This document shows, piece by piece, positions 41,401 to 57,014 of a stretch of DNA of 64,000 nt. The notes beneath the pieces were generated by a model that made no database searches, was not told the DNA's origin, and was given only the letters and a program-made list of their open reading frames with translations. The DNA comes from Mytilus trossulus. Its lineage: Eukaryota. Each line of letters starts with the position of its first letter. Position 1 is the stretch's first letter. The stretch is from contig NC_086382.1 in assembly GCF_036588685.1 (NCBI RefSeq), positions 48,360,001 through 48,424,000 on the forward strand, in the 5' to 3' direction. The translations under genes were made by a program, and so were the position numbers.

Positions 41401-44400
41401 ATTCCATACAATTTACTCACCACAACAATCAGGTCTGTTCATTATTTCAATCCGTTTAATGTTATATACCAGCCCCAGATCTACCCACCAATATGGTAGA
41501 TATTCAAAGCTGGTACTAGAGAAAGTAGCTGGGTTTCCATCAATTGCATAGTCTGTAGAGCAACATGTATTGTTTCTCCAGGAAGTTGTGTTACTCCAGA
41601 GGGAACTTTGATTACTTCCTTTTAGTAGTGCAACGTTTGAAATACCATCATCTTGTCCTTGCAAGTCTATGAAATAAAAGGATACTAGTCTTTGCATCTA
41701 AATAAAATATTATTTTCATGATTCATCAAACCATGAATGTATCAAAGTTATTTTACCGGGAAATCTAAATTCCCTGGTTTCTTTCACTGGATATATGTTT
41801 TCACCAATTTCATCAATGGTACAAAGAAATTTCTGTAATTAATTTTATGAAACACCTAATGATGTTATTTCTGTCCTTCATCTTTATGGTTTTACTCTGC
41901 TCAATAAACATGTGAATGTTATATCCGAATCTTCACGTAGGCTTCTATAAGAAATAATACTTTGCAAAAAGTCTTTCAAGGAAAGCATGTATTCCCTATT
42001 CATTTAACAAATCCTCATTTCCAGTAATATTTCAAAGGAGTAAGTGTTGTGAGGGCCTTAATTGGCTATTATTTCAAATCTTTTATTTGAGAGTGAAAAC
42101 ATTTTACTTTTTAATAAAATTTGATCTGTGAAGATGCATTACTCTTTGATAAACCCAAAACAGTGTATAAATAGGCCAAAAACTGCCAAAGTGTTGTTCA
42201 AGCCTGCTGCTTAGGGTGTGCCTCTTTCTAGAGTACACTGTCTAGCTATACAACTAAGTCTGATTTTTTTAAGTTTCAGTGTTATGATGACGCTAATGAC
42301 GACGTGACGAAGAAGACAATGTGATAAGAGACGTTCCCCCTAGAAAAAAAACCAACAAACATCTTACTCTTTGTGAAGAGACGAGAAATTTATGTCTGGT
42401 TAAAATAGTTACCTAGTTATCAAAGGTGACAGGATCATAATTTAATGCCCAAAGAAAGGTACCAGGATTATTATTAAATACGCAAGACGTGCGTTTCGTC
42501 TTCATAAGACTTATTAGTGACAATCATATCAAAAAAGTTAAAAAGGCAAACAAGTAAATGTTGAGGAGCATTAAGGAACCAAAATTCCAAAAAGATGTGC
42601 CAAATACGGATAAGGTAATCTACTCCTGGGATAAGAAAATCCTTAGTTTTTCGAAAAATTCAAAGTTTTGTCACCTGTTAATTTATAAAAATGACCACAT
42701 AATTGATATTCATGTCAACCGAATTGCTGAAAAGTGTGCCCCACCAATACATGAGAGGTTGTTAATGAATATATCTGATTGAAAAATTGAATTAAAGATG
42801 GCCAAATTATTTATATTCATGTCAAAACCAACGTGTTGACTATATGGCTGGTTATACCCTCGGGGACGAAACGTCTACCAGCAGTGGTATCAACCCAGTG
42901 GTGTAAATAGTTATCAAAGGTACCGGGATTAAAGTGATATGACAATAACCTTTTGTGGGCGTCAAATAATTATTTATTTCAAATAAATTGTAAAGTTTTA
43001 TTATTGATGAATTGAAATTTTGACATCTTGCTCATTATTCAATATTTTATGAGATATAGATACAATGGATAAGCGTTGATTCTTAAATAGTTATCTCACT
43101 CGGACTTGGTGTGTCAGTGTAAGATCACCCCGATGGGCGGAGGCTAACTAGGGATAACTATTTTACATCCCAGCTGTTTTAGATTAGACGATAAAACATT
43201 TACAATTCATAAAATGTCGTTTAGAACGCCACACAACCATTATTTTATACTTTATATATTACTTTATGATTTATACCCTTTATGACCCTCGAACACGATA
43301 AGAAGATGTCAAACAATGCCACCTCGCCCCACTGGTTGTTCTGGTGTAGTGGTATGTGTCGTTCCCAAGGATTCAAACTCAAGACCTTAAATACATGCTT
43401 GAATTCGAACTCAAGACCTTAAATACATGCTTGGATTCGAACTCAAGACCTTTAGCATATCAAGGCACGACACATACCACTACACCAGGACGACTCGATA
43501 CGAGTAATTTAACATACGTAAAGGAAGCAACATGTATTTATTAGTGGGGCGAGTTGTCAGACCTATATTCAGTGGGGGTTACACCCTTTTCATTTATAAG
43601 TAAGTTGTCAGACTGAGTATTTAATTTTATTATACAATTTTTCAAAAGTGGGGCGAGTTGGTAAAAAGAGTGGGTCAATTTTTTTGAAATAAAGTGGCGA
43701 TCAAGTATGGGCCGATTGTCCAGTGGGGCGACTTTCCATTGTTTATTTCTACTCATCGTGTTCGGGGTTATACAGGGTATACATTTACATTTATAGTAAT
43801 ATATAAACATATTACGTGGAATGTACCTTGTATGACCACCTCTTGCATTTATGACCGCCTGACACCTCCACCGCATGGAATCAATAAGACATCGAATAAA
43901 ATCTTGAGGTATGTTGTTCCATTCCCTGAAAAGTGCTGTTCGGAGCTGGGCTAGCGTTTCCGTTGTATTTTGGCTATTTCTAATTCGTCGTCCAAGTTCA
44001 TCCCGAAAATGTTTAATTGTTGATTTAATCTGGAGACATTGCTGGCCAAGGCAATACACGAATATGGTTATTCACCAAAAATGTCATCGAAATGTGTGTC
44101 ACGTGACAACGGGCGTTGTCTTGCTGAAAAAAGTGGTAAAAACGATGTCTTTGGAGAAACGGAAATCAAAGACATATGAAAATCTAAAATATGACCTTGA
44201 ACTTTGACCTTGACCTATTTTTCTAAGTTTGGACCCAGGGGACTCAAATAAAAACATTCCAGGGTTATACGGTTAACAACTAAAGCCAGAATTTCGTCCC
44301 TATACCTTGTTGCATTTAGGTGTACCAACGATGATTTTGAGTTCGGGGTTTTCCTGGTAGGTAATTCCGCCCCGTTCCATGATTCCGCCACCAACAAACC

Positions 44401-47376
44401 GATCTGTTTCCAGCACGCACGCATCAGAAAATCGTTCATTGCGTCTCCGGAAGACCCTGACCCTGCCGTCACTGAATTTCAAGTTGAATTTAGCCTGTGG
44501 CGCGACTGCGCATGCGTAAGGATAGGTCCCTTCAATGGACGACGAGCTCTTAGACCAACTTGATGTACATATGTAATCTGTTACGAACTGTTTGATCAGA
44601 AATTCTGTTGTTATGTCTTTCGTGGATTTGTCGTACAGCTTGTGACGCGTTTACAAATCGATTTCGAAGATGAATGATGCGGATGTGTTTGTCTTGACCG
44701 TAACGTCGTTTCACGTGGCCTGTCACTACGGGGGCGATCATTTGTTTTGCTAGTATCTCTAAGACGAGTCTTAAGCCTAACAATAGTCATTCGAGAGACA
44801 TTAAAATGATTTGCACTTGCCAACATCCCAATAGCTCGTTCTCTCTCATTTAGGCGTAGACGGGGCATTGTTTTACGTGTAACTTTTCAATTTTTCAATG
44901 CCACCTTTTGTTCACAATCGTGTTCGTGTTCGACACACTTTAAATGACAAAAAGGACAACTCGATTCCAACTTTATACGGGCAAATATTTGAAAAAAAGG
45001 TTATTTGTTTGAAATCAGAAAAATTACGTCATGTCATTTCCGATATTTATATAAATGAGTAAATTTGATAGATAACTTATTCAGGTTACTAGTTTTAATC
45101 ATGAAAATATTTGAAATTAATATATTTTCAAATTAAAAACCAATGTAACGTTCATTTTTTTTGCCTAGTATATAATGGTTGTGTGGTGTTCTAAACTAGA
45201 TTTTATGAATTGTAAATGGGTTTTCGTCTAATCTTAAATAGCGGGGATGTAAAATAGTTATCACATTTGGACTTGGTGTGTCAGTGTTAAATCACCCTCT
45301 GGAATCTGGCCATCGGGTGATCTTACACTGACACACCGCGTCCTTGTTGGATAACTATTACAGAATCCTTGGTAAATGAATAGGCTGACGTCACCACAAT
45401 GGTTTATTACATTTTCCTTCTGTTTTGAATAATATTGTAAAGAAATACTAGTATCGATTCTCTGAAATGGAACTTGATTTCCCTTAACGTGTGTGATGAC
45501 GTTTTTTTTAATTGTATTGATAATACTTTGTAGTAACTATTGTCCGTTTTAATAATTTAGGTACTAGTATTTATCTACATTGGAACTGGTAGGGTGGGGT
45601 GCCATATCTTTCCATGTTTTCTTCAGTTTATATTCAGGTCTTGATGTTTTTGAAGTATACTGATATTTCTATATGAAGATAACTTCAAATGCAAAATATT
45701 CTTAGCTTGAAAACGTGTTTGTTTTGAGTAAAATCATTTGAAAAGTTGGATTAAATTTAAAATTATTTTTTTGTCAACGGGGGACACATATTCGCCGTTT
45801 TTACATATCTATTTAAAACCAAATAACTGCAGCTTTAAACAATATTTATCAAATAAATTTCATTATAGACGAATAGCAGACATTTGCAAGGTGTAAAAAA
45901 ACTAAAATTTAGGGCAATCAGTCAAAGAATTACTAAGAAATGCTTTTTTGAAATCGTTTTTTCATTCATGAAATTGGCCGAAAATCGTTGTCCATTTTTC
46001 GGTCCTTTGCCGTAAGTGCCGAAATTTAGTCTCATTTTCAAAAATAATCATATTTGTTATAAAAATATAATTTAACGGCATATTTCTCCCATTTATGATT
46101 TCAACCATCCTTTGAAGTTTTTACACCTCAAAATCATAAAACGGCGAAATTGTGTCCACGGCGAATATGAGCCCCCCACTCTAAATGGTAATTTAAATCG
46201 GTAAATTGGTTTACCTAAGAATAAATACGGCGGATAATACAGATAATACTTCAGCAATATTTTACCAGTAGCAAGTAACACATGCCAACGCCGAGCTATT
46301 TCAATATAATAGATATAAGAATATGTGGTATGAGTGCCAATGAGACAACGCTCCATCCGAGTTCAATTTTTAAAAGTAAACCGTTATAGGCCAAGGTATG
46401 CCGTCAACACGCAGCCTTGTCTGACACCGAACAGCAAGTTATAAAGAGCCCCAAAATTACTAGTGTAAACAATTTTAAATGGGAAAATAAATGGTATAAT
46501 CTATATAAAAATTAAAAACGAGAAACACGTATGAAGCACATAAAGTATAGATAGAATATACCAGACCAAGCAGTACGAGGAGACTATGTCCATAAAATGT
46601 GGATATATTAATTATTTTACAAATGAAACTTAAAAAATACTTTACAACGAATCTTTTGATATTGAGTTTTACCATTTGCCGATTTCGAAATTTCCAACTA
46701 GTAAACTATCAAGTATACTTTTCTACTATCTAGTTTCTTTAATTCAAGATAGAAAGTTGATGATATATATTTTTTTAGACTAGAATACTGTTAAGTTATA
46801 TAATATTTATATGTACTGTGGAATGCATATCAAAGTAACTATAAGTTAATTTCCTTTTAAAAAGTTTATTATTTTTACAAACATCGATACGGTAGGTTTC
46901 TATCAGAAAACCTGTACTCCAATCTATCCTTTTATATGAAAGTCATTACCTTACCAGATGATACAACCTTTCCAGGGTGTATACAGATTACCAGGTTACC
47001 ACGATATCAGAGTCAGACGCTACCAAAGAAGGGTAACCAGTTCTAACTTTTAGTTCTTATATACTCGTACAATCTAACAAAACATATTTTCATAACAACA
47101 CACTAAGGGATAAACAAGAGTTTAACACTAAGACCTAACCGCTCGGTTTTCGTTACATCATGTTTTGTGTAATTTATTTTGATTAATTATACCCCATTAA
47201 CTTTGTCTAGCGCTCTACATTTGGAGAAAATAGTTAAAATTTTCAAATTGACCTTTGAGAGTGAAACTTTATTTGTACCTCATCGTGTTTAACTTAAATA
47301 CAAAAAATCAGCCCAATATCTAAAGACGTTTAGAAAAAAAATTCGTATAACAATGATTTTGTGTGGACGGCAACTA

Positions 47377-47733: not shown

Positions 47734-48410
47734 TCTATTTACACTCACAAAAGTCTAATAGATGTTCTATAACAGTGAATAAGTTTCACTGTGTTACAGA
47801 CTATTAAAAAATTTCGTTTAGCGAATCAAATCAATTTTCCTTATTAAATGAAAATATTTTGTAAATGTTTATAATATCAGATTAACAATTGATACCTTTA
47901 ATAATAAAATTATAAATTGGTTTTAAGTCACTTATATTTTATGTATGGTAACGGAAATATGAAACCATTATTTGAGTCTTATATTTTACATGTATGTATA
48001 GAAACGGAATAATGAATCCCTTATTTGAGATAAATACTCACATTTTCCTTTTTGATTTCGTACTAAAAAAAAATTAATCAAATTCAGTTCAAGGAAGTTG
48101 TGTTATAAAAACAATTGATTATTCAATTTTTGAAATTAAAGGACACCGGCCACTTCAAACAATCATTTGTAAAATAAATCGTAATGGGATGTAAACATCG
48201 TTAATTTCGTAGATAAGAGTGTAACACATATCGTATGTCTATAAAAACAGGTTGTATCAGCTTGAAATAATCCTTCTCCGGACATTGCCGATAATTGCCG
48301 ACATTTAATAAGCAACTTCCCGAAGGAGTGCGTGACGTCACTTGTGTTGTTTACATCCGCTAGACCACGAGAATCCTACTATTTCTAACTAAAATTTAAC
48401 AAAGTATACA

Positions 48411-49745
48411 ATGGATTTCGACGGACAGGACAGCGGCGATGAGCCATTTATAACTGCTGTTGATAATATTCAACCGTATCAGTTCGAGCCTGTTGTTCAT
48501 ATTGAACAAAACGAAGTGAGCAGTCAAAACCAATCGGACTCCTCTGAGGAAAATTCTGAAGCTGAATCTGACTCCTCTGACCTGCAAGACAGCCGGATGG
48601 ATAACTTGGCATGGTATGATTGATTGTCTAATACTGTCTAACATGATTAAATACTTCACATTACCAAGCCTCCTAGATGTAAACGTTTTCGTTCGTTTTT
48701 TGTTCTTCAACAAAAAAAGGGGGGTTGGCATGTATATCATACACATGTGCCTACAGTACTATACAGTCGCATATTTAACACTTCCTTACCTACATATAGA
48801 GTCAAATAAGACATAGAAACTATAAGTTTTAATTCAAAAAAAATATTCAATTGACACAATAATATTGAATTGATGTTAAAATGCATCATGCTATTCTTTT
48901 CACATTGATGCATTGTAACTTTTTTTTATGAATTACTTGACAGTTTTTTTTTTATAAATTTACATGATAATAGATCTTACTGAGGATTTATTGTAAAATA
49001 GTCAAATCTACATGTACGTTGTACAATAAATTTCCCAGGTGTGACTGTAACCACTGCGCTGCAATGCCCACTGTGGATGAATGCCTCTGTTGCAAGGAAG
49101 TTGGTCCAGTTGCAGAAAAAATGGAAGATGAGGACCTCGATTGTATTACAGATCATGAGGGGTTCACTGGAAACTGTTTAAATAGACATGTCATTGAGGT
49201 CTCTTTGTATGACTTTGTTGAAAGGCAGGGACCAATAGACGACAATGAACCAATTCATGAGTAAGTCCAATTTAATATTGATGATTAAAAATAAATTTAA
49301 CTTCACAACTATCATTTTTTATTTACAATTTTAATCATAAACAATATAAAAAAAAAGTCAAGACCAAGCTGATGATGAATTGCAAAAAGCTTAAGGCTAA
49401 ATAAATAAATCTGAGTAAACATACAAAATATACATGTATCATCATGAAAATATGAACTCTCATCTTGATCACTTTTTTAAGCATACTGATATATCAGTTA
49501 AAATAATATCCTTGTTCAAGCTTTGAGTATCACTGTATCACTTTGTAAAAAGAATATGAATAATTTGTTTAATATGCTATTTTTTCAGATTATATAGATA
49601 TGTTGCTTACAGACGGTTCACTCGTTGGATCTGGCATATACTTGGCAAAAAAAGAAGAAAGGTGATACCAGCATGTGCAGTATTAAAAATTAGGGAGGCA
49701 TTCCCGTCTGAGGACTTTACTGGATTCAAATATGCCAGGCCATGA
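48411..49745 (+). CDS. Kolobok second protein (KolX-like), P2X7 ballast-like Cys-rich domain, 193 aa; exons 48411-48613, 49039-49260, 49589-49745
   Basis: Spliced product: acidic leader with IQPYQFEP, then WCDCNHC..ECLCCKE..CITDHEGF..CLNRHVI..LYRYVAYRRFTRWIW..LGKKRRKVIPACAVLKIREAFPSEDFTGFK. Both introns are GT-AG, phase 2; the 582-nt CDS is open. Confidence 0.88.
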
Positions 49746-49929
49746 TCATTTGAAAAAAAATCATTGTGGTTAAAATCTTGGTAAATTTCATGTTTCCACA
49801 AACAGAGCTTTGAAAGATAAAAACACTCGACTACATGATGTAAATTGTGGTAAATACAATTCAAATGGTGAAGAGTTATATGGAACAAAGATCGCAAAAC
49901 ATATTTAAACAAATGTACGAGAAATGATG

Positions 49930-52900
49930 TCAGTTTCTAGCAAAACGACTTGTTCGATGTCTTATTAGCTCCTCCTTATCAAATTGAGGGTTTGATGCTG
50001 TTAGTGGAGGGAGTCTCTGATATACAATGTTAAAGTCCTCTAAGGCTTCTTTAATGCTTGATAAGTTATTTCGTCTGTCAAAAGTTCTTTTCAGAAGAGC
50101 TCCAACATAATCTACAAGACAAATAGAAACTATATGTAATAGCTCAGCCTCTAATTTACATAATTAACCGTGCAAATTTATAGATGCAATGACATTACTT
50201 GGATGTGCAGTCTGCATTTTTAGAATATTAACTTTTTCGATTCCAATAGTACAAAAAGAGATTCATAATACTGTAAATAAACCAACATTATTACAAAATA
50301 AATGTCTTGCTTACTGCTTTTTATGTTTTATTATTGAACCAGAAAGTTGAACGAAATTTTACCATAGGTCGCTTGAACTTTCTGCGGTTTGACAACACAT
50401 TGCTCTCCTTTTTTTGCTTTAGGGTACGACTTTTTCCATTTCAGGATGCCTGCTTTTGTGACAGCTTGCTGTCTATTTCCATTCTCATTGTAATGCAATG
50501 CAGCAATATAAATTCTGGAGAAGAAGAAAAAACATTACAAAATTATTATCAAATTTTAAGATAAGGAACCTACTAAACTTTTAATTTATTGCTTCAAAGT
50601 TTAAAATTAGCCACTGATGAGTTTATGTGTATACTATGTGGTGACCATGATTACAGTACAGGTATACACCTTTCATTAATTTGTTTGGTATAGGTTATTT
50701 TGACATATTGTACACAATCAATTACCTTGCTTTCATTGCATATTGGAAGAAGTGGGTGTTCTTTGGTGCATACTGGTTCACAAGAGAGTGATACACCTCG
50801 AGGCCATATGTCTGGTGCACTGGTGACAGCTTTTTTAAATCTTTTAGCAAGTATTTGCTTTCGATTACTTCCAGAACAAGTTTATGAGATTTGGAACCTA
50901 AAAATTAAAATAAAATATAATTTATTAAAACGATAATTTGGGCTAGATGCAAACGTTTAAACATATATGGCTACAAATGATGAGGCATTTTCTCAAAAAT
51001 AGTACAAAGCCATGAAACACAACAAGTGTCCCTTTTTCATAGAACATGAAAACCATTTGTACTTAAGATATTTGTTTACCTTGTTTAAGCCAAGCTCTTT
51101 GTTCCTCAAGCTCTCCATGGATACATTGCGGAAATACATCAGACTCATGGACATGTTTATTCATGATGTGGTTTGAAATTGATGTCCATTTGTGTATTTT
51201 TTCGTTCTGATCTTCCCCACTTGATGCAGCCACCCAATATGTATGGTTAACAATGCTCTTTATCCATGGTCTTATGTCTCCTGTGTCTTTTTTTTTGGCT
51301 CTGGTTTCCAACTTTTTTGATATTCCTGCAAGTAATGGAATAAAGAAAACATTTTGAAATGTATTTTTTATCAACAGCCTAAGAGTATTGCAGATTTATA
51401 AAATATGATTTATTCACAACTTGATAAGATAATACAATTAGTTCTAGTATGAAATTAATTGAGTAATACCTTTTGCTATATGCCATACATCGAAATAATG
51501 ATTTATTTCTGGATGGTTGTCCTTCATGAACTTCTTAATCATAACATGTCTATCTGTGACAAGTGTTGAGACTTCAATATGGTTAGTGTCTATAAGAAGA
51601 GATAAACCCCTCTTAAGTCCTTCCAATTCCATATGGGTTGACCCCTTAACTTCATTGGACTGAAAAAAATAAGCAAACACTGAAATTATTTGTCAACATG
51701 ATTTATGAAAACAATAAGATTTGGGGGAAATTCATGAAATACTGGCCACTGGACAACATCGATAAATCTGTAGTAAGTGTGTTTAACTATTTCCTTCTAA
51801 GCATTTATACAGATCTTATTTAAATCTGAAATATATATACATATAAACAATGAGATTTGGGTTATATTCATGAAATACTTGCCACTGGACAGCAACAATC
51901 AATCCATTTTAAGTAGTATGCATGTTAAGCTGTATTTATTTGTAATCATTTTAATACAGATCTAATTTAGATTTAAATTGAGAAATCCATCAAGAGTTAA
52001 TTAATGCAAACCTGAACAAGCTGAATGTCCAATATTTTATTTGTGTTCAAGTCCATCAGAGTGTAACTGCCATATTTAGCACTATAACCAGGACTGTCGC
52101 ACCTTCCGTCGCCACCAAGTACTACTTGTTTATCTGGACCTGCAATATTAAAAAGGGTAATGCGTGAAGATTATAACACTCTTATTCATATAATTAACAA
52201 TAAAATTATTCTGTACAGAATATATATTAACAAGATACCTAATTTGACAGAGGGAGAAAATGAGGATAGAAATAAACATATTCCAAGAATAAATAAAAAG
52301 ATACGTGTATTCCAGGAAATAAATAAAAAGATATGTGAGTATATTAAAAGAGGTGACACTACGAAGAAATATACATACCTTGCAAGGAAGCTATTAGATC
52401 TGCTTGCTGGGAGTCGAATTCATAGATAACTGCACATGATGTGTATGCTGTTTGCAGTCTTCTAACCGAGCGTTCACTAATGCCTTTCAGTTTCATTTGA
52501 TCAAACAGTCTTACAATCTTTGCTGTATTATTCCCGCTAAACATTATGGCACTTGCAAGCAAAAGATTTCCCCATGGTAGTCTTTCATGACAGTTTTGGG
52601 ATTTCCACTTGTAGACGTGTCCAAAAGCACATACAGAAGATGTAGATATCATTGTCCCTCTACTGAATTCAATAATTGGAATGCATCGATTGTTACACTC
52701 TCTACATACTGATAGTAACTGAAATAGTGCTGTTTCAGAGACCATGTAATACTTTTCTTCAACTGGATCATTACATTCTTCCATTCTGTAATTGCTTGTT
52801 TCTTCCTCATCGTCAGATCCATACTCATCGTCTCCATCTTCTTCCTCGGACTCGTTATAAATATAATCCGGATCATTATCATATTCATCTACATCATCTT

Positions 52901-54155
52901 CATCATCATCACTCTCATCATTGTCATCCTTGTTTTGTTCGGTCGCTGCCGGTGCAAGGCTACTGCTTGTAATTTTTCCGATTATCGTTCTGTTCTTCGA
53001 TGTGGCGACTTTACTTGCTGAATCAATATCTGAAGGGTTACACTGAATGCCTTTAGACTTTCTCTTGGGTTTTAATGTTTGGTTTCTTCTAGTTCTCTGC
53101 GGAATGGGATCTGTTTGATTTTTCTGTATTTTCATGTTTGTGTAATCGGTGTTAAAAGATTTTGACACAAATGTTTTTGGTATATCTACCGGAATTTCTA
53201 CCTCTTCCTGAATCTCCATACTGTCAGCTGCGGGTGGCGATTCAGTTTCAGTGTCAATGGAGTCGACGGACTTATCTAATGATTCATTAAAGGCCTCTTG
53301 AAGAACCTATAGTAAAATTAAATTTTTATTTTAAAAATTGCTTTCATCAATAAATTATACATGTATAATTCACCTTTTTGGTCGTTGTATTCGGGAAAGG
53401 ACCGGGTCGTAGATTTCCTGTGGAATTGAATTTGTTTTCTTTAGTTAGACTCACGAAACCTTTACTCGTTTATTTTATTTTATAATAGATTTAGAATGTC
53501 AATATACGGACTTCTTCTACAAGCGACTGATTTCAGAAAAAAAAAGTTTACGAGAAAAATATAAATCCCAGAAGTCCTGAACATTTTAGTATGACTTTGA
53601 TAATGTTTTATTGGATCGTTATATAATGTAAATGGATGTATATACCTTTTCATGTAAATAAAATAAATGCTTTGACAATTTTTACTTGAACCAAAACGGG
53701 AAGAAAGATATACAAATATAATAAATAATAATAATTAAAACCATACAGATAAAACCAAAAACATATTTTTCACAAAAGTTTCAATGGATAATAAAGAGAA
53801 TCAATTGTACCTGACGTTTCTGTCTTTTTTCGAAGGCCGACCTAGGCTTTTTAGGAGAAGATGGTCCTTTTTCTGCATCTACAACTACAGGAATGTCGGG
53901 CATGGCGTCATCTTTTAGAGCTGCCTTTGCACCCGGATATCCCAATTCTGAAAGTCTTTCAGGGTGCCTGCTATACTGATTTAGGGTAAAATGTTTAGAA
54001 CAAATTCTGCTGTGCTTAGACGGTGTAAAGTCCTGTCGTTTACAATAGTGAACCCAAGAACGATTTCTCTGAGAATCTTTCGGAAAAGTAAACCAATATA
54101 TATTTTTGTCACATTGAGAATTGCTATTGCAACCGTAAACCACACAATACGGCAT
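49930..54155 (-). CDS. Kolobok transposase with N-terminal THAP zinc finger and DDE core, 780 aa; exons 54155-53811, 53306-52379, 52139-52012, 51659-51470, 51325-51080, 50897-50726, 50514-50363, 50111-49930
   Basis: THAP CVVYGC..FP..W..ICSKHF..AMP; acidic linker; CREC..CAFGH; catalytic motifs GDGRCDSPGYSAKYG, VTDRH, FDVWH and TYGLEVYHS; LHYNEN; C-terminal SRF. All seven introns are GT-AG with consistent phase, giving an open 2343-nt CDS. Confidence 0.9.
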
Positions 54156-57014
54156 ATTTACACTTATATTTACGAAATAAAAAAATAATTACTTCTTACT
54201 TTTAAATAATTCTACTACGTGAAGATTTGTATTACATAAAACTAAAACATGGATGTAATATGAGACATGAATGGAACCCTATACTCATGGAATTTCTGTA
54301 TTATCTATATAGTATTACCACTGAGAATATACAGCTGGTAACACAAGTGATGTCATAGCCGTGAGCCTCGTTATCATGTCTGAAAATATGCATACAAGGG
54401 CGATCAAGGCCATCTGTGTATACATTACTGATTATCACATTCCCTGATAAGAAATACACATAACAACATGAAGATATCGATTTTATTAACTATAAAGGTT
54501 TTATTTTACACATGATTGTTTGAAGTGGCCGGTGTCCTTTAAAACCAAATAAAAATAAGCTACTGCTTTTTTCTGAAGTTTTTATACTCACAACTGAATT
54601 TTACGTCGTTTTTATGAAAAAAATCAGAATCGCTGTACATTTCAAGTTTTAAATATTGCATGTTCTTTTTTCTTTTGCTTATAAAATTGCAGCTTTGTTT
54701 TTATGCTTTTTATTCTTCATATAGTTGAAGCGTTTCCCTCGAGTTTGGTCTGTAACCTGGGTTTGTTTTTTTCTCAATCGATAAATGACTTCTAAACACC
54801 GGTATACTAGTACTGTTGCATTTTTTTCGATAAAAGTACATTTCTCTCAATGTATCCTCTCACATTGCACTGATGAAACTTAGTTGGTAATATATGGCCA
54901 TTTTACTTAAAACAGATTCAGTACTAAGAAATTTTTCAAGACCGTATGTGGGTTGCTGTGTTATAAGCAAATAGCATATGGACCAGAACGACTATCTCAA
55001 AAAGTCAAATAAAAACACAGCTGAAGGTCATACGATACAGTTTTGATCCCACGTTGAACTTATTTTACAAACATGTGCATACAAGCTCTTTTTCACCTTA
55101 ATGTTTTAAGAATGTAATAAACACAACCGGATGTTTTCCTGCAGATGTCGAATCATGATCAGTTGCGCAAGTATGGACACTACATTTAAGCTTACGACAG
55201 CTCTACATTTGGATTGTGAATGAATATTTAAAATAGATTATTATCTAATTAATAAAAAAAATATGTAAGCAAATCTGAACCACAAACACGATTATGTAAA
55301 CAATAAACATTAACACACGTAACAAAAATATGATACCATATAGCAACTGTGACATCTACCTCAATTTAACACTCATGTCATATCTAGTGCCCCTTTAAGA
55401 CATTTTGATGTTATTATTACGGGTTCATTGGATAAGTTTGAGTTATTTTCCTTTGAATATAAAAATGGTTTTACATAGTACACTTACATTAGAAATGATA
55501 AAATTAATGAAAAAAGTCTAAATTAGATTTGATGTAATACAATGTATATCTATTTTCGAGTTATAATAATAGTTCCAAATATTTTTTCTTTCTTTTATCG
55601 CACACTAATATAGATGTCACAAACTTAATCTACACAATGTAATGTAATGAAACATATTCTTTAATAAGATATATATTATTTTCTAGATAAAAGAATAAAC
55701 TTCATAATCAGAGCTCTACTTCATAATTTTATTTATTCATATGTATAGCATTATGAAAATTTGTTTATACATAATACTAAATAATCCGACCAAAATTCTT
55801 TAAACAATTTACCAAAGTGAAGGGAAAACATCAAAATGTTATCTATCATTTAATACGATGTCTTTTAAAATGACTTATATCCCCTTGTACAGAAATGGAT
55901 GAATTCATCAAAACTTGAATTCATTCGAAAGGAAATTAACTCAACAACAAGAAAAGCGAAAATCTTGAAAATTGAACTTGATCTTCATTTAGGCACTGGA
56001 AACAAAATATATAAACTAATAAAAAATCTTTAAAGCGTTCTCATGTCCATGAAGAAACACTGTTTGGCAAAAAGACTGCCCGCCCGCCCGATAGCCCAAC
56101 CGCCTGCCCGATAGCCCACCCACTAGCCTGACATCCCCAAATCAATAACCGACTATTTTTTCTTCGACAATCCGGTTTAAATTATGACTTCATGTGCTAC
56201 GTTAAATAAATTGGATAGACATTTAAGGTTTCTACTTATTTTTTTTTCTTTTCAGTCCGACTGATAAAAATCAGTTGAAAAAAATGCATCTTTTCCTGAT
56301 ATGTAGTGTCGTATTTCTCCTCTTATATTTGATGTGTTTCCCTCAGTTTTAGTGTGTAACCCGGACTTGTATTTTTTTCTCAATCGATTTATGAAATCGA
56401 ACAGCGGTATACTACTGTTGCCTTTGTTTATGTCATAGTTTGACGTCGCGAAAAATAACAATTAATATTGGCAACGTAATTAGCTCCCCTGTGGCTTTAT
56501 CGGTTGCCAAATTTACACACTGTTGTTTGACATCAGTTTAGAACTTTTGCTTAGAAATACCTCGTGATCTTTAATCTTTGTTTATAAATAAGAGAAAATA
56601 CATTGGAAATACTAATAATTTCTTGTGTACAATATGGAAATTAGTATGGCGTTAATTATCACTGAACTAGTATATATTTGTTGAGGGGCCAGCTAAAGGA
56701 CGCCTCCGGGTGCGGGAATTTCTCGCTATATACATTGAAGACCTGTTGGTGAACTTCTGCTGTTGTTTTTTCTATGGTCGGGTTGTTGTCTCTTTGACAC
56801 ATTCCCCAGGTCCATTCTCAATTTTAGAGTTGTCCTTCTTGTCATACTAACAGTTCACGATAACTACCAAAGAATGACAACATAAATACTACATTTAAAC
56901 AGTAATCAACTAAAAATTTACACCTCACGTGTACATGGAAATAATTGCGTTTCATATGTGTCAGATTTGGCAAGCAAATTCAAACACTATGAGGGTAACG
57001 GACATATATTTTAG

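Follow-up and report, generated by a model that had tools for sequence, protein, structure and literature searches.

Kolobok transposons are recognised by TTAA target-site duplications, by ends of the form 5'-RR...YY-3' and by a transposase with a C/DxxH signature that is followed by a zinc finger (PMC9587614). In the Kol0 lineage, Kojima and Bao (Mob DNA 2022, PMC9587614) described a further protein, KolX, which resembles residues 476-595 of human P2X7 and has the ballast fold of that receptor with its seven cysteines. The same study derived P2X7 from a P2X4-like gene to which a KolX gene became fused, and identified zebrafish nanor as a KolX that had been domesticated. An earlier account of the stand-alone domain by Rump et al. 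(2020, PMC7016195) ranged across Metazoa, with oyster and limpet among the species, and left its presence in transposons unnoticed. Our literature search found no paper besides that of Kojima and Bao linking 'ballast' with transposons, and no study of, or experiment on, the function of KolX.

We have examined one such gene in a 64,000-nt window of the Mytilus trossulus genome; the window is the whole stretch that was analysed, and positions are counted from its first letter. A sequence-only reading had proposed that a small gene in this window is a transposon-borne, stand-alone homologue of the P2X7 ballast and that P2X7 may have acquired its ballast from such an element. This central inference is correct as to the homology and probably so as to the origin of P2X7, but it is already published, and the element adds no new concept to it; the caution that the link between KolX and the ballast might be in print was well placed, as it has been since 2022 (PMC9587614). 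The element occupies 48140-54538 (6,399 bp), with ends set by its inverted repeats:

48136-48139, no strand: left TTAA target-site duplication
48140-48178, plus strand: left terminal inverted repeat, beginning 5'-AGG, 38 of its 39 bases complementary to the right end
54500-54538, minus strand: right terminal inverted repeat, finishing ...CCT-3'
54539-54542, no strand: right TTAA target-site duplication

The two 39-bp repeats thus differ by one mismatch, and a TTAA abuts each. The terminal sequence AGGACACCGGCCAC was found twice in the window, at 48140 (plus strand) and at 54538 (minus strand), against a chance expectation of 0.04, and TTAA adjoins the left repeat in four more copies, each with different flanks. 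The termini AGG...CCT fit the 5'-RR...YY-3' pattern, unlike those of piggyBac. Two convergent genes lie inside the repeats: a three-exon KolX on the plus strand, placed there also by the sequence-only reading, and an eight-exon THAP-DDE transposase on the minus strand. The TTAA duplications, the RR...YY termini, the DDE, DxxH and zinc-finger motifs and the second protein are hallmarks of the Kol0 lineage, and the small gene is, by these hallmark features, KolX, the second gene of an autonomous Kol0-type Kolobok cut-and-paste transposon. The arrangement shares with the published Kol0 elements a second gene beside a DDD/E transposase, the TTAA duplications, the 5'-RR...YY-3' ends, the similarity to P2X7 476-595 and the seven cysteines; it differs in its three-exon KolX, its eight-exon transposase and its convergent transcripts that abut or overlap. 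Elsewhere in the window, minus-strand frames at 43541-44868 resemble a decayed Tc1/mariner-type transposase, as judged by eye from the translations.

KolX extends over 48411-49745 and comprises 193 codons (67+1+73+1+51), with its stop codon at 49743-45:

48411-48613, plus strand: exon 1, with the start codon, the N-terminal peptide motif, an acidic Ser-rich tract and the first two bases of a W codon
48468-48491, plus strand: N-terminal short motif IQPYQFEP (residues 20-27), present in 14 of 25 homologues and in three other families
49039-49260, plus strand: exon 2, encoding the opening helices of the ballast fold and all but one of the seven Zn cysteines (CxCxxC, CC, CIT)
49589-49745, plus strand: exon 3, with the last of the seven Zn cysteines, the FP and GFK motifs, the stop codon and the helices whose counterparts in P2X7 make up the GDP site

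The tryptophan codon of WCDCNHC is divided TG|G by the joint between exons 1 and 2, and a GA|A codon spans the joint between exons 2 and 3. All of the motif strings that had been picked out by eye (WCDCNHC, CLCC, CIT, YRYVAYRRFTRW, IPACAVLKIREAFP and FTGFK) occur in the order given and in one spliced frame. The 193-residue spliced model was likewise borne out by transcript data: a 983-nt spliced contig from public run X1 maps to 48377-48612, 49038-49260 and 49589-50112 and reproduces both joints exactly, each bordered by GT..AG, the first of them at 48612/49038 (a cut shifted by +1). Run X2, which carries another species label, supports the second joint, 49260/49589, also with GT..AG. Seven CT..AC joints in the same runs mark introns of the gene on the opposite strand; the runs therefore contain spliced RNA, though their records are silent on that. 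The RNA reads of two 2026 runs (X20 and X23) amount to just 11 and 4 partial reads, which hold no information on strand or transcript ends. We conclude that KolX is spliced and expressed. The transcript contigs run unbroken from KolX exon 3 through the last coding exon of the transposase (49589-50112), one contig joining both genes, so the 3' ends of the convergent mRNAs abut or overlap. Such ends could yield double-stranded RNA; the contigs themselves are strandless. The claim that no channel domain is present also stands. The transcript-supported reading frame has 193 codons, P2RX7_C is the one Pfam domain in the KolX exons, and by these two measures the P2X ectodomain, the two membrane segments and the Cys anchor are absent.

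The transposase gene comprises about 780 codons in eight exons, every one of which is bordered by AG/GT and open in phase:

53811-54155, minus strand: coding part of exon 1, THAP DNA-binding domain (Pfam THAP, E 1.9e-15)
52379-53306, minus strand: exon 2, acidic linker and N-terminal zinc-finger region
52012-52139, minus strand: exon 3, first catalytic D (GGDGRCDSPG), 68% identical to the sister family L013
51470-51659, minus strand: exon 4, second catalytic D (VTDRH) and DxxH signature (DVWH), with a weak MULE match
51080-51325, minus strand: exon 5, PWIKSIVNHTYW helix and zinc finger, the insertion region that separates the second D from the E
50726-50897, minus strand: exon 6, catalytic E motif (LEVYH)
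50363-50514, minus strand: exon 7, AG/GT-bordered and open in phase
49930-50111, minus strand: last coding exon, with the stop codon at 49930-49932

The motifs GGDGRCD, VTDRH, DVWH, the ..C.H finger and LEVYH, in exons 3-6, are collinear with those of the intronless 600-residue transposase of L013, another Kolobok family of this genome, and the catalytic, DxxH and finger residues are invariant in our transposase alignment (A2). Pfam holds no Kolobok model and the transposase core gave a weak MULE match only; a search by sequence with the transposase profile found no relative of solved structure. Modelled with AF2, the L013 transposase (core pLDDT 70-90) has the RNase H transposase fold, and the structures nearest to it are ISCth4 (IS256 family), Hermes and the P element transposase. 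A special structural kinship between the Kolobok transposase and the P element enzyme was considered and rejected, as ISCth4 and Hermes rank higher.

Homology of KolX to the P2X7 ballast was assessed with the exons taken separately, each as its own query or alignment row. Exon 3 alone scored 33.8 bits against Pfam P2RX7_C (PF20478; curated cut-off, 23.5 bits), with an E value of 4e-8 over profile positions 146-191; exon 2 gave a weak match of 12.9 bits at positions 82-127, collinear with that of exon 3, and the intronless paralogue in L013 scored 71.3 bits. Exon 3, searched against 1.8 billion cluster representatives, had 828 relatives at E <= 0.001, and the full-length ones have 150-240 residues and the same architecture. 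Searches of the PDB with single sequences were weak: exon 3 reached rat P2X7 at E 0.03, and exon 2 found an unrelated hydrolase only (E 0.057). A profile was therefore needed. Built from 19 full-length homologues and the three window exons as separate rows (alignment A1), it matched P2X7 alone among 177,635 PDB sequences, over rat residues 469-594 (E 5.3e-20). The fold was tested on a proxy, the closest full-length homologue (P0033, XP_035984146.1 of the fish Fundulus heteroclitus), which shares 49% identity with exon 2 and 61% with exon 3 of the window gene. In the AF2 model of this protein the core has a pLDDT of >90. With Foldseek, the top 14 matches to the model are all P2X7 (E 5e-5 to 2e-3) and the next lie above E 3; with VIA-align, P2X7 residues 413-595 gave a Z of 10.2-11.3 (117-122 residues superposed with an rmsd of 3.4-3.8 A), and the next-best fold a Z of 3.5. 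These profile and proxy-model results uphold the proposed homology: the C-terminal two thirds of KolX belong to the P2X7 ballast, or zinc-cysteine, domain family (PF20478, PTHR36981).

The residues of the metal and nucleotide sites were compared by means of the lists of Zn ligands and GDP contacts in PMC7016195 and PMC9587614. All seven Zn ligands of rat P2X7 (C477, C479, C482, C498, C499, C506 and C572) align with cysteines in KolX, as had been judged by eye. The retention of some pocket arginines was also correctly seen: with exon 3 aligned to rat P2X7 546-594, two of the five GDP contacts are kept (R546 and R578), while H547 is replaced by Y, R574 by V and K583 by S. Rump et al. (PMC7016195) found that, of the GDP residues, R546 and R578 alone are conserved in non-vertebrate members, and the pattern in KolX matches that of all the non-vertebrate members in their study. 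Y550 and F581-P582 are kept as well. Guanine-nucleotide binding by KolX, and the role as a nucleotide-sensing regulator that the sequence-only reading had suggested, are possible only. Set beside the rat ballast (6U9V/6U9W; PF20478), KolX has the same fold on the proxy model (Z about 11), the seven cysteines and R546, Y550, R578 and F581-P582, but neither the channel with its membrane segments and Cys anchor nor H547, R574 and K583. It has in addition an eighth cysteine, where rat P2X7 has E496 (family consensus ECxCC), a basic loop (GKKRRK) that corresponds to the GDP-facing loop of P2X7, an acidic tract and a peptide motif in its N terminus. Nanor and the NANOR-like proteins (PTHR36981; PMC7016195) are similarly short, with a C-terminal ballast domain and a variable N terminus. 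They have been described as host genes without mention of transposons, whereas the KolX of the window lies demonstrably in a transposon and has an N terminus with a conserved peptide.

Copies of the element and the pairing of its two genes were surveyed in this 1.3-Gb genome. A copy 2.5 Mb away (G000:C10:45,846,717-45,851,377) matches the window element at 100% wherever the two were compared (1,661 bp and the 858-bp transposase exon) and has unrelated flanks and its own TTAA. It points to very recent transposition, and on account of it we conclude that this Kolobok element is recently active in the M. trossulus genome. Two 99% copies (L003/L010 and L004/L009, at G000:C5:85.49 Mb and 72.37 Mb) have an insertion of about 8.8 kb in KolX exon 1 and premature stops; they have in common the exon 1 insertion, a stop in exon 2 and identical outer flanks, and are a duplicated segment or an assembly duplicate rather than two insertions. 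Other copies are 91% identical with frameshifts, 88% identical with exons 2 and 3 open, and 71% identical and decayed. In diverged copies the exons of KolX differ less than its introns (6.3% against 15.3%, P = 2e-5; 5.3% against 10.0%, P = 0.002), a difference that points to selective constraint on KolX, as far as sequence comparison can tell. Near-identical matches to 24-65% of the 31-mers of the element were seen in runs X1-X19, which carry five coded species labels, so the family is common to several closely related species or populations.

A second Kolobok family of this genome (L015) has eight copies with equal-scoring open transposase frames of 631 residues and a convergent KolX; its sites are G000:C9:63.27-63.30 Mb, C6:20.68, C7:9.16, C7:49.95, C10:15.74 and C14:41.05 Mb, with three copies within 35 kb on C9. 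This family, too, looks recently active.

The sequence-only reading had left room for a one-off capture of a host P2X7-like gene, and a host gene might also merely lie between two inverted repeats. The annotation of homologues in oyster, scallop, ark clam, ticks, killifish and coelacanth as 'P2X purinoceptor 7-like' would favour such an origin. The pairing survey decides against it. Pfam P2RX7_C has 84 matches in 67 loci genome-wide, and exon 2 of the window transposase, used as a probe, has 32; a ballast locus lies within 10 kb of 23 of these 32, in convergent orientation in 23 of 23 cases, where 0.03 pairs would be expected by chance. With a second probe, 25 of the 67 ballast loci are paired and 24 of the 25 pairs are convergent. 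The pairs span at least eight Kolobok families whose transposases are just 26-44% identical to that of the window, and the ballast gene is therefore a regular partner gene and not a one-off capture. A homologue in the tick Ixodes is named 'Putative kolobok-2 xt', the published descriptions of KolX agree (PMC9587614), and the 193-codon reading frame has no channel domain; we consider the capture of a host gene refuted by the survey and give it practically no weight. The label 'P2X purinoceptor 7-like' is, for homologues of KolX, a misnomer.

Two KolX genes with no transposase reading frame nearby (L018 and L019) both belong to the KolX family of L013. They were examined as examples of unpaired intact ballast reading frames that might be domesticated host genes, and are more likely deletion derivatives.

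Two observations concern relatives in other species. The killifish KolX (P0033) is nearer to the window copy (49-61%) than are some KolX of the same genome, and the patchy distribution of KolX is as expected if Kolobok elements move between lineages. In an annotated protein of the coelacanth Latimeria chalumnae (P0020, XP_006001817.1), the last part of a KolX ballast domain is joined to the C-terminal half of a transposase of Kolobok type (NHxYW helix, zinc finger and LExxH); either the fusion is real or the gene model is chimeric.

The N terminus of KolX has a conserved feature of its own. The peptide IQPYQFEP has the form hydrophobic-x-P-Y-x-F/Y-E/D-P and is followed by the acidic serine-rich tract. 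Of 25 full-length homologue representatives, 14 have the strict motif, where 1,000 shuffles gave 0.04 on average and 1 at most; KolX genes from three further Kolobok families of the genome have it too, and the tick homologues have a variant of it. A complex of KolX with its transposase was predicted for the intronless sister family L013 (transposase residues 120-599 with the 199-residue KolX), the transposase of which is 26-27% identical to that of the window, so that the result holds for a relative of the spliced window proteins. The prediction scored 0.66 in each of three runs, whereas the best control scored 0.00; the pLDDT of the partners was at least 73, and at least 55% of the contacts were common between runs. 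In the calibration of the mark used for docking, 51 of 78 solved complexes reached it, as did 2 of 108 mismatched pairs and 7 of 44 blind neighbouring gene pairs; the calibration covers classes of interface other than the disordered peptide predicted here. No like complex has been solved, so the prediction does not repeat a known structure. On the KolX side, the confident interface consists of residues 20, 23-34 and 39 only, which are equivalent to the conserved peptide. On the transposase side, it consists of V347-W348 (DVWH), the helix P372-R386, H405 and C420-H422 of the zinc finger, R431-K434, and H467 and G469, which lie shortly before the catalytic E472. A prediction of this kind had been suggested as a check; in the sister family it places the peptide on the transposase with confidence, but not the ballast domain. 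The transposases of Kolobok-like lineages that lack KolX (L021-L025) differ at the predicted contact helix by a seven-residue insertion, a comparison of two lineages only that carries little weight. Neither the PYxFEP peptide nor the predicted docking site appears in the account of Kojima and Bao, and the conserved peptide with its predicted site beside the catalytic site of the transposase is possibly new.

On these grounds we propose, at close to an even chance, that KolX is a two-part accessory subunit of the transposase, composed of a peptide anchor and a tethered ballast. The IQPYQFEP peptide would dock on the insertion region that bears the DxxH motif and the zinc finger, beside the catalytic glutamate; the acidic serine-rich linker, presumably flexible, would tether the ballast domain at or near the active site; and that domain, held by its two-zinc cluster, may act as a regulatory or cofactor-binding module. 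The P element transposase has a GTP-binding domain at the same insertion point, where GTP positions the transposon end (PMC7776569). The insertion domain of the Drosophila enzyme (6P5A) offers an analogy in how such a module might work and has an unrelated fold; it is part of the transposase chain, whereas the module of KolX would come from a separate protein. A bolder version of the proposal, and one that we hold to be somewhat unlikely, is that the PYxFEP peptide clamps a two-zinc and possibly nucleotide-binding ballast at the active site, in trans, in a position comparable to that of the GTP domain which the P element enzyme has in cis.

In P2X7 the ballast serves as a hub of signalling, for which proteins, lipids and nucleotides have been proposed as partners (PMC9859053), and KolX may instead act away from the transposase, through its ballast on host proteins, small molecules or silencing pathways, with its peptide docked on a host protein. 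That the ballast domain was left unplaced on the transposase in the predicted complex would fit this reading, as would the retention of KolX in L018 and L019, which lack a transposase frame nearby. These KolX-only copies, however, are members of L013 that appear to have arisen by deletion. The predicted interface between peptide and transposase (0.66, with controls at 0.00) and the strict convergent linkage across families with transposases only 26-44% identical also argue against a host-directed role, and we regard it as unlikely, at about one chance in four in our judgement. The position of the predicted contacts raises another alternative, in which KolX is a self-restraining inhibitor that occupies the insertion region by the catalytic glutamate and damps transposition. 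The contacts include the DxxH motif and the residues just before the catalytic E, the convergent transcripts abut or overlap, and P elements are an established case of transposons that encode their own repressors (PMC7776569). If KolX did nothing but inhibit, it would be easily lost; yet all the autonomous Kol0-type families seen here keep it under constraint, and the young copies have both genes intact, transposase and KolX together. We therefore consider an inhibitory role improbable. Taken as a whole, the best explanation of the locus, which we think probable though far from certain, is that the gene is the KolX of a recent and expressed Kol0-type element, that it belongs to the P2X7 ballast family and that it would serve as a two-part accessory subunit.

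In summary, the gene models that annotations of molluscs, ticks and fish label 'P2X purinoceptor 7-like' are for the most part transposon genes. The element described here provides a clean natural system, being intact and expressed, with two genes, young copies, intronless sister families and a testable peptide contact, and this system lets one ask what the ballast domain does in its probable ancestral setting. If the bolder version of the proposed role of KolX is true, the ancestral job of the P2X7 ballast would have been to serve a transposase.
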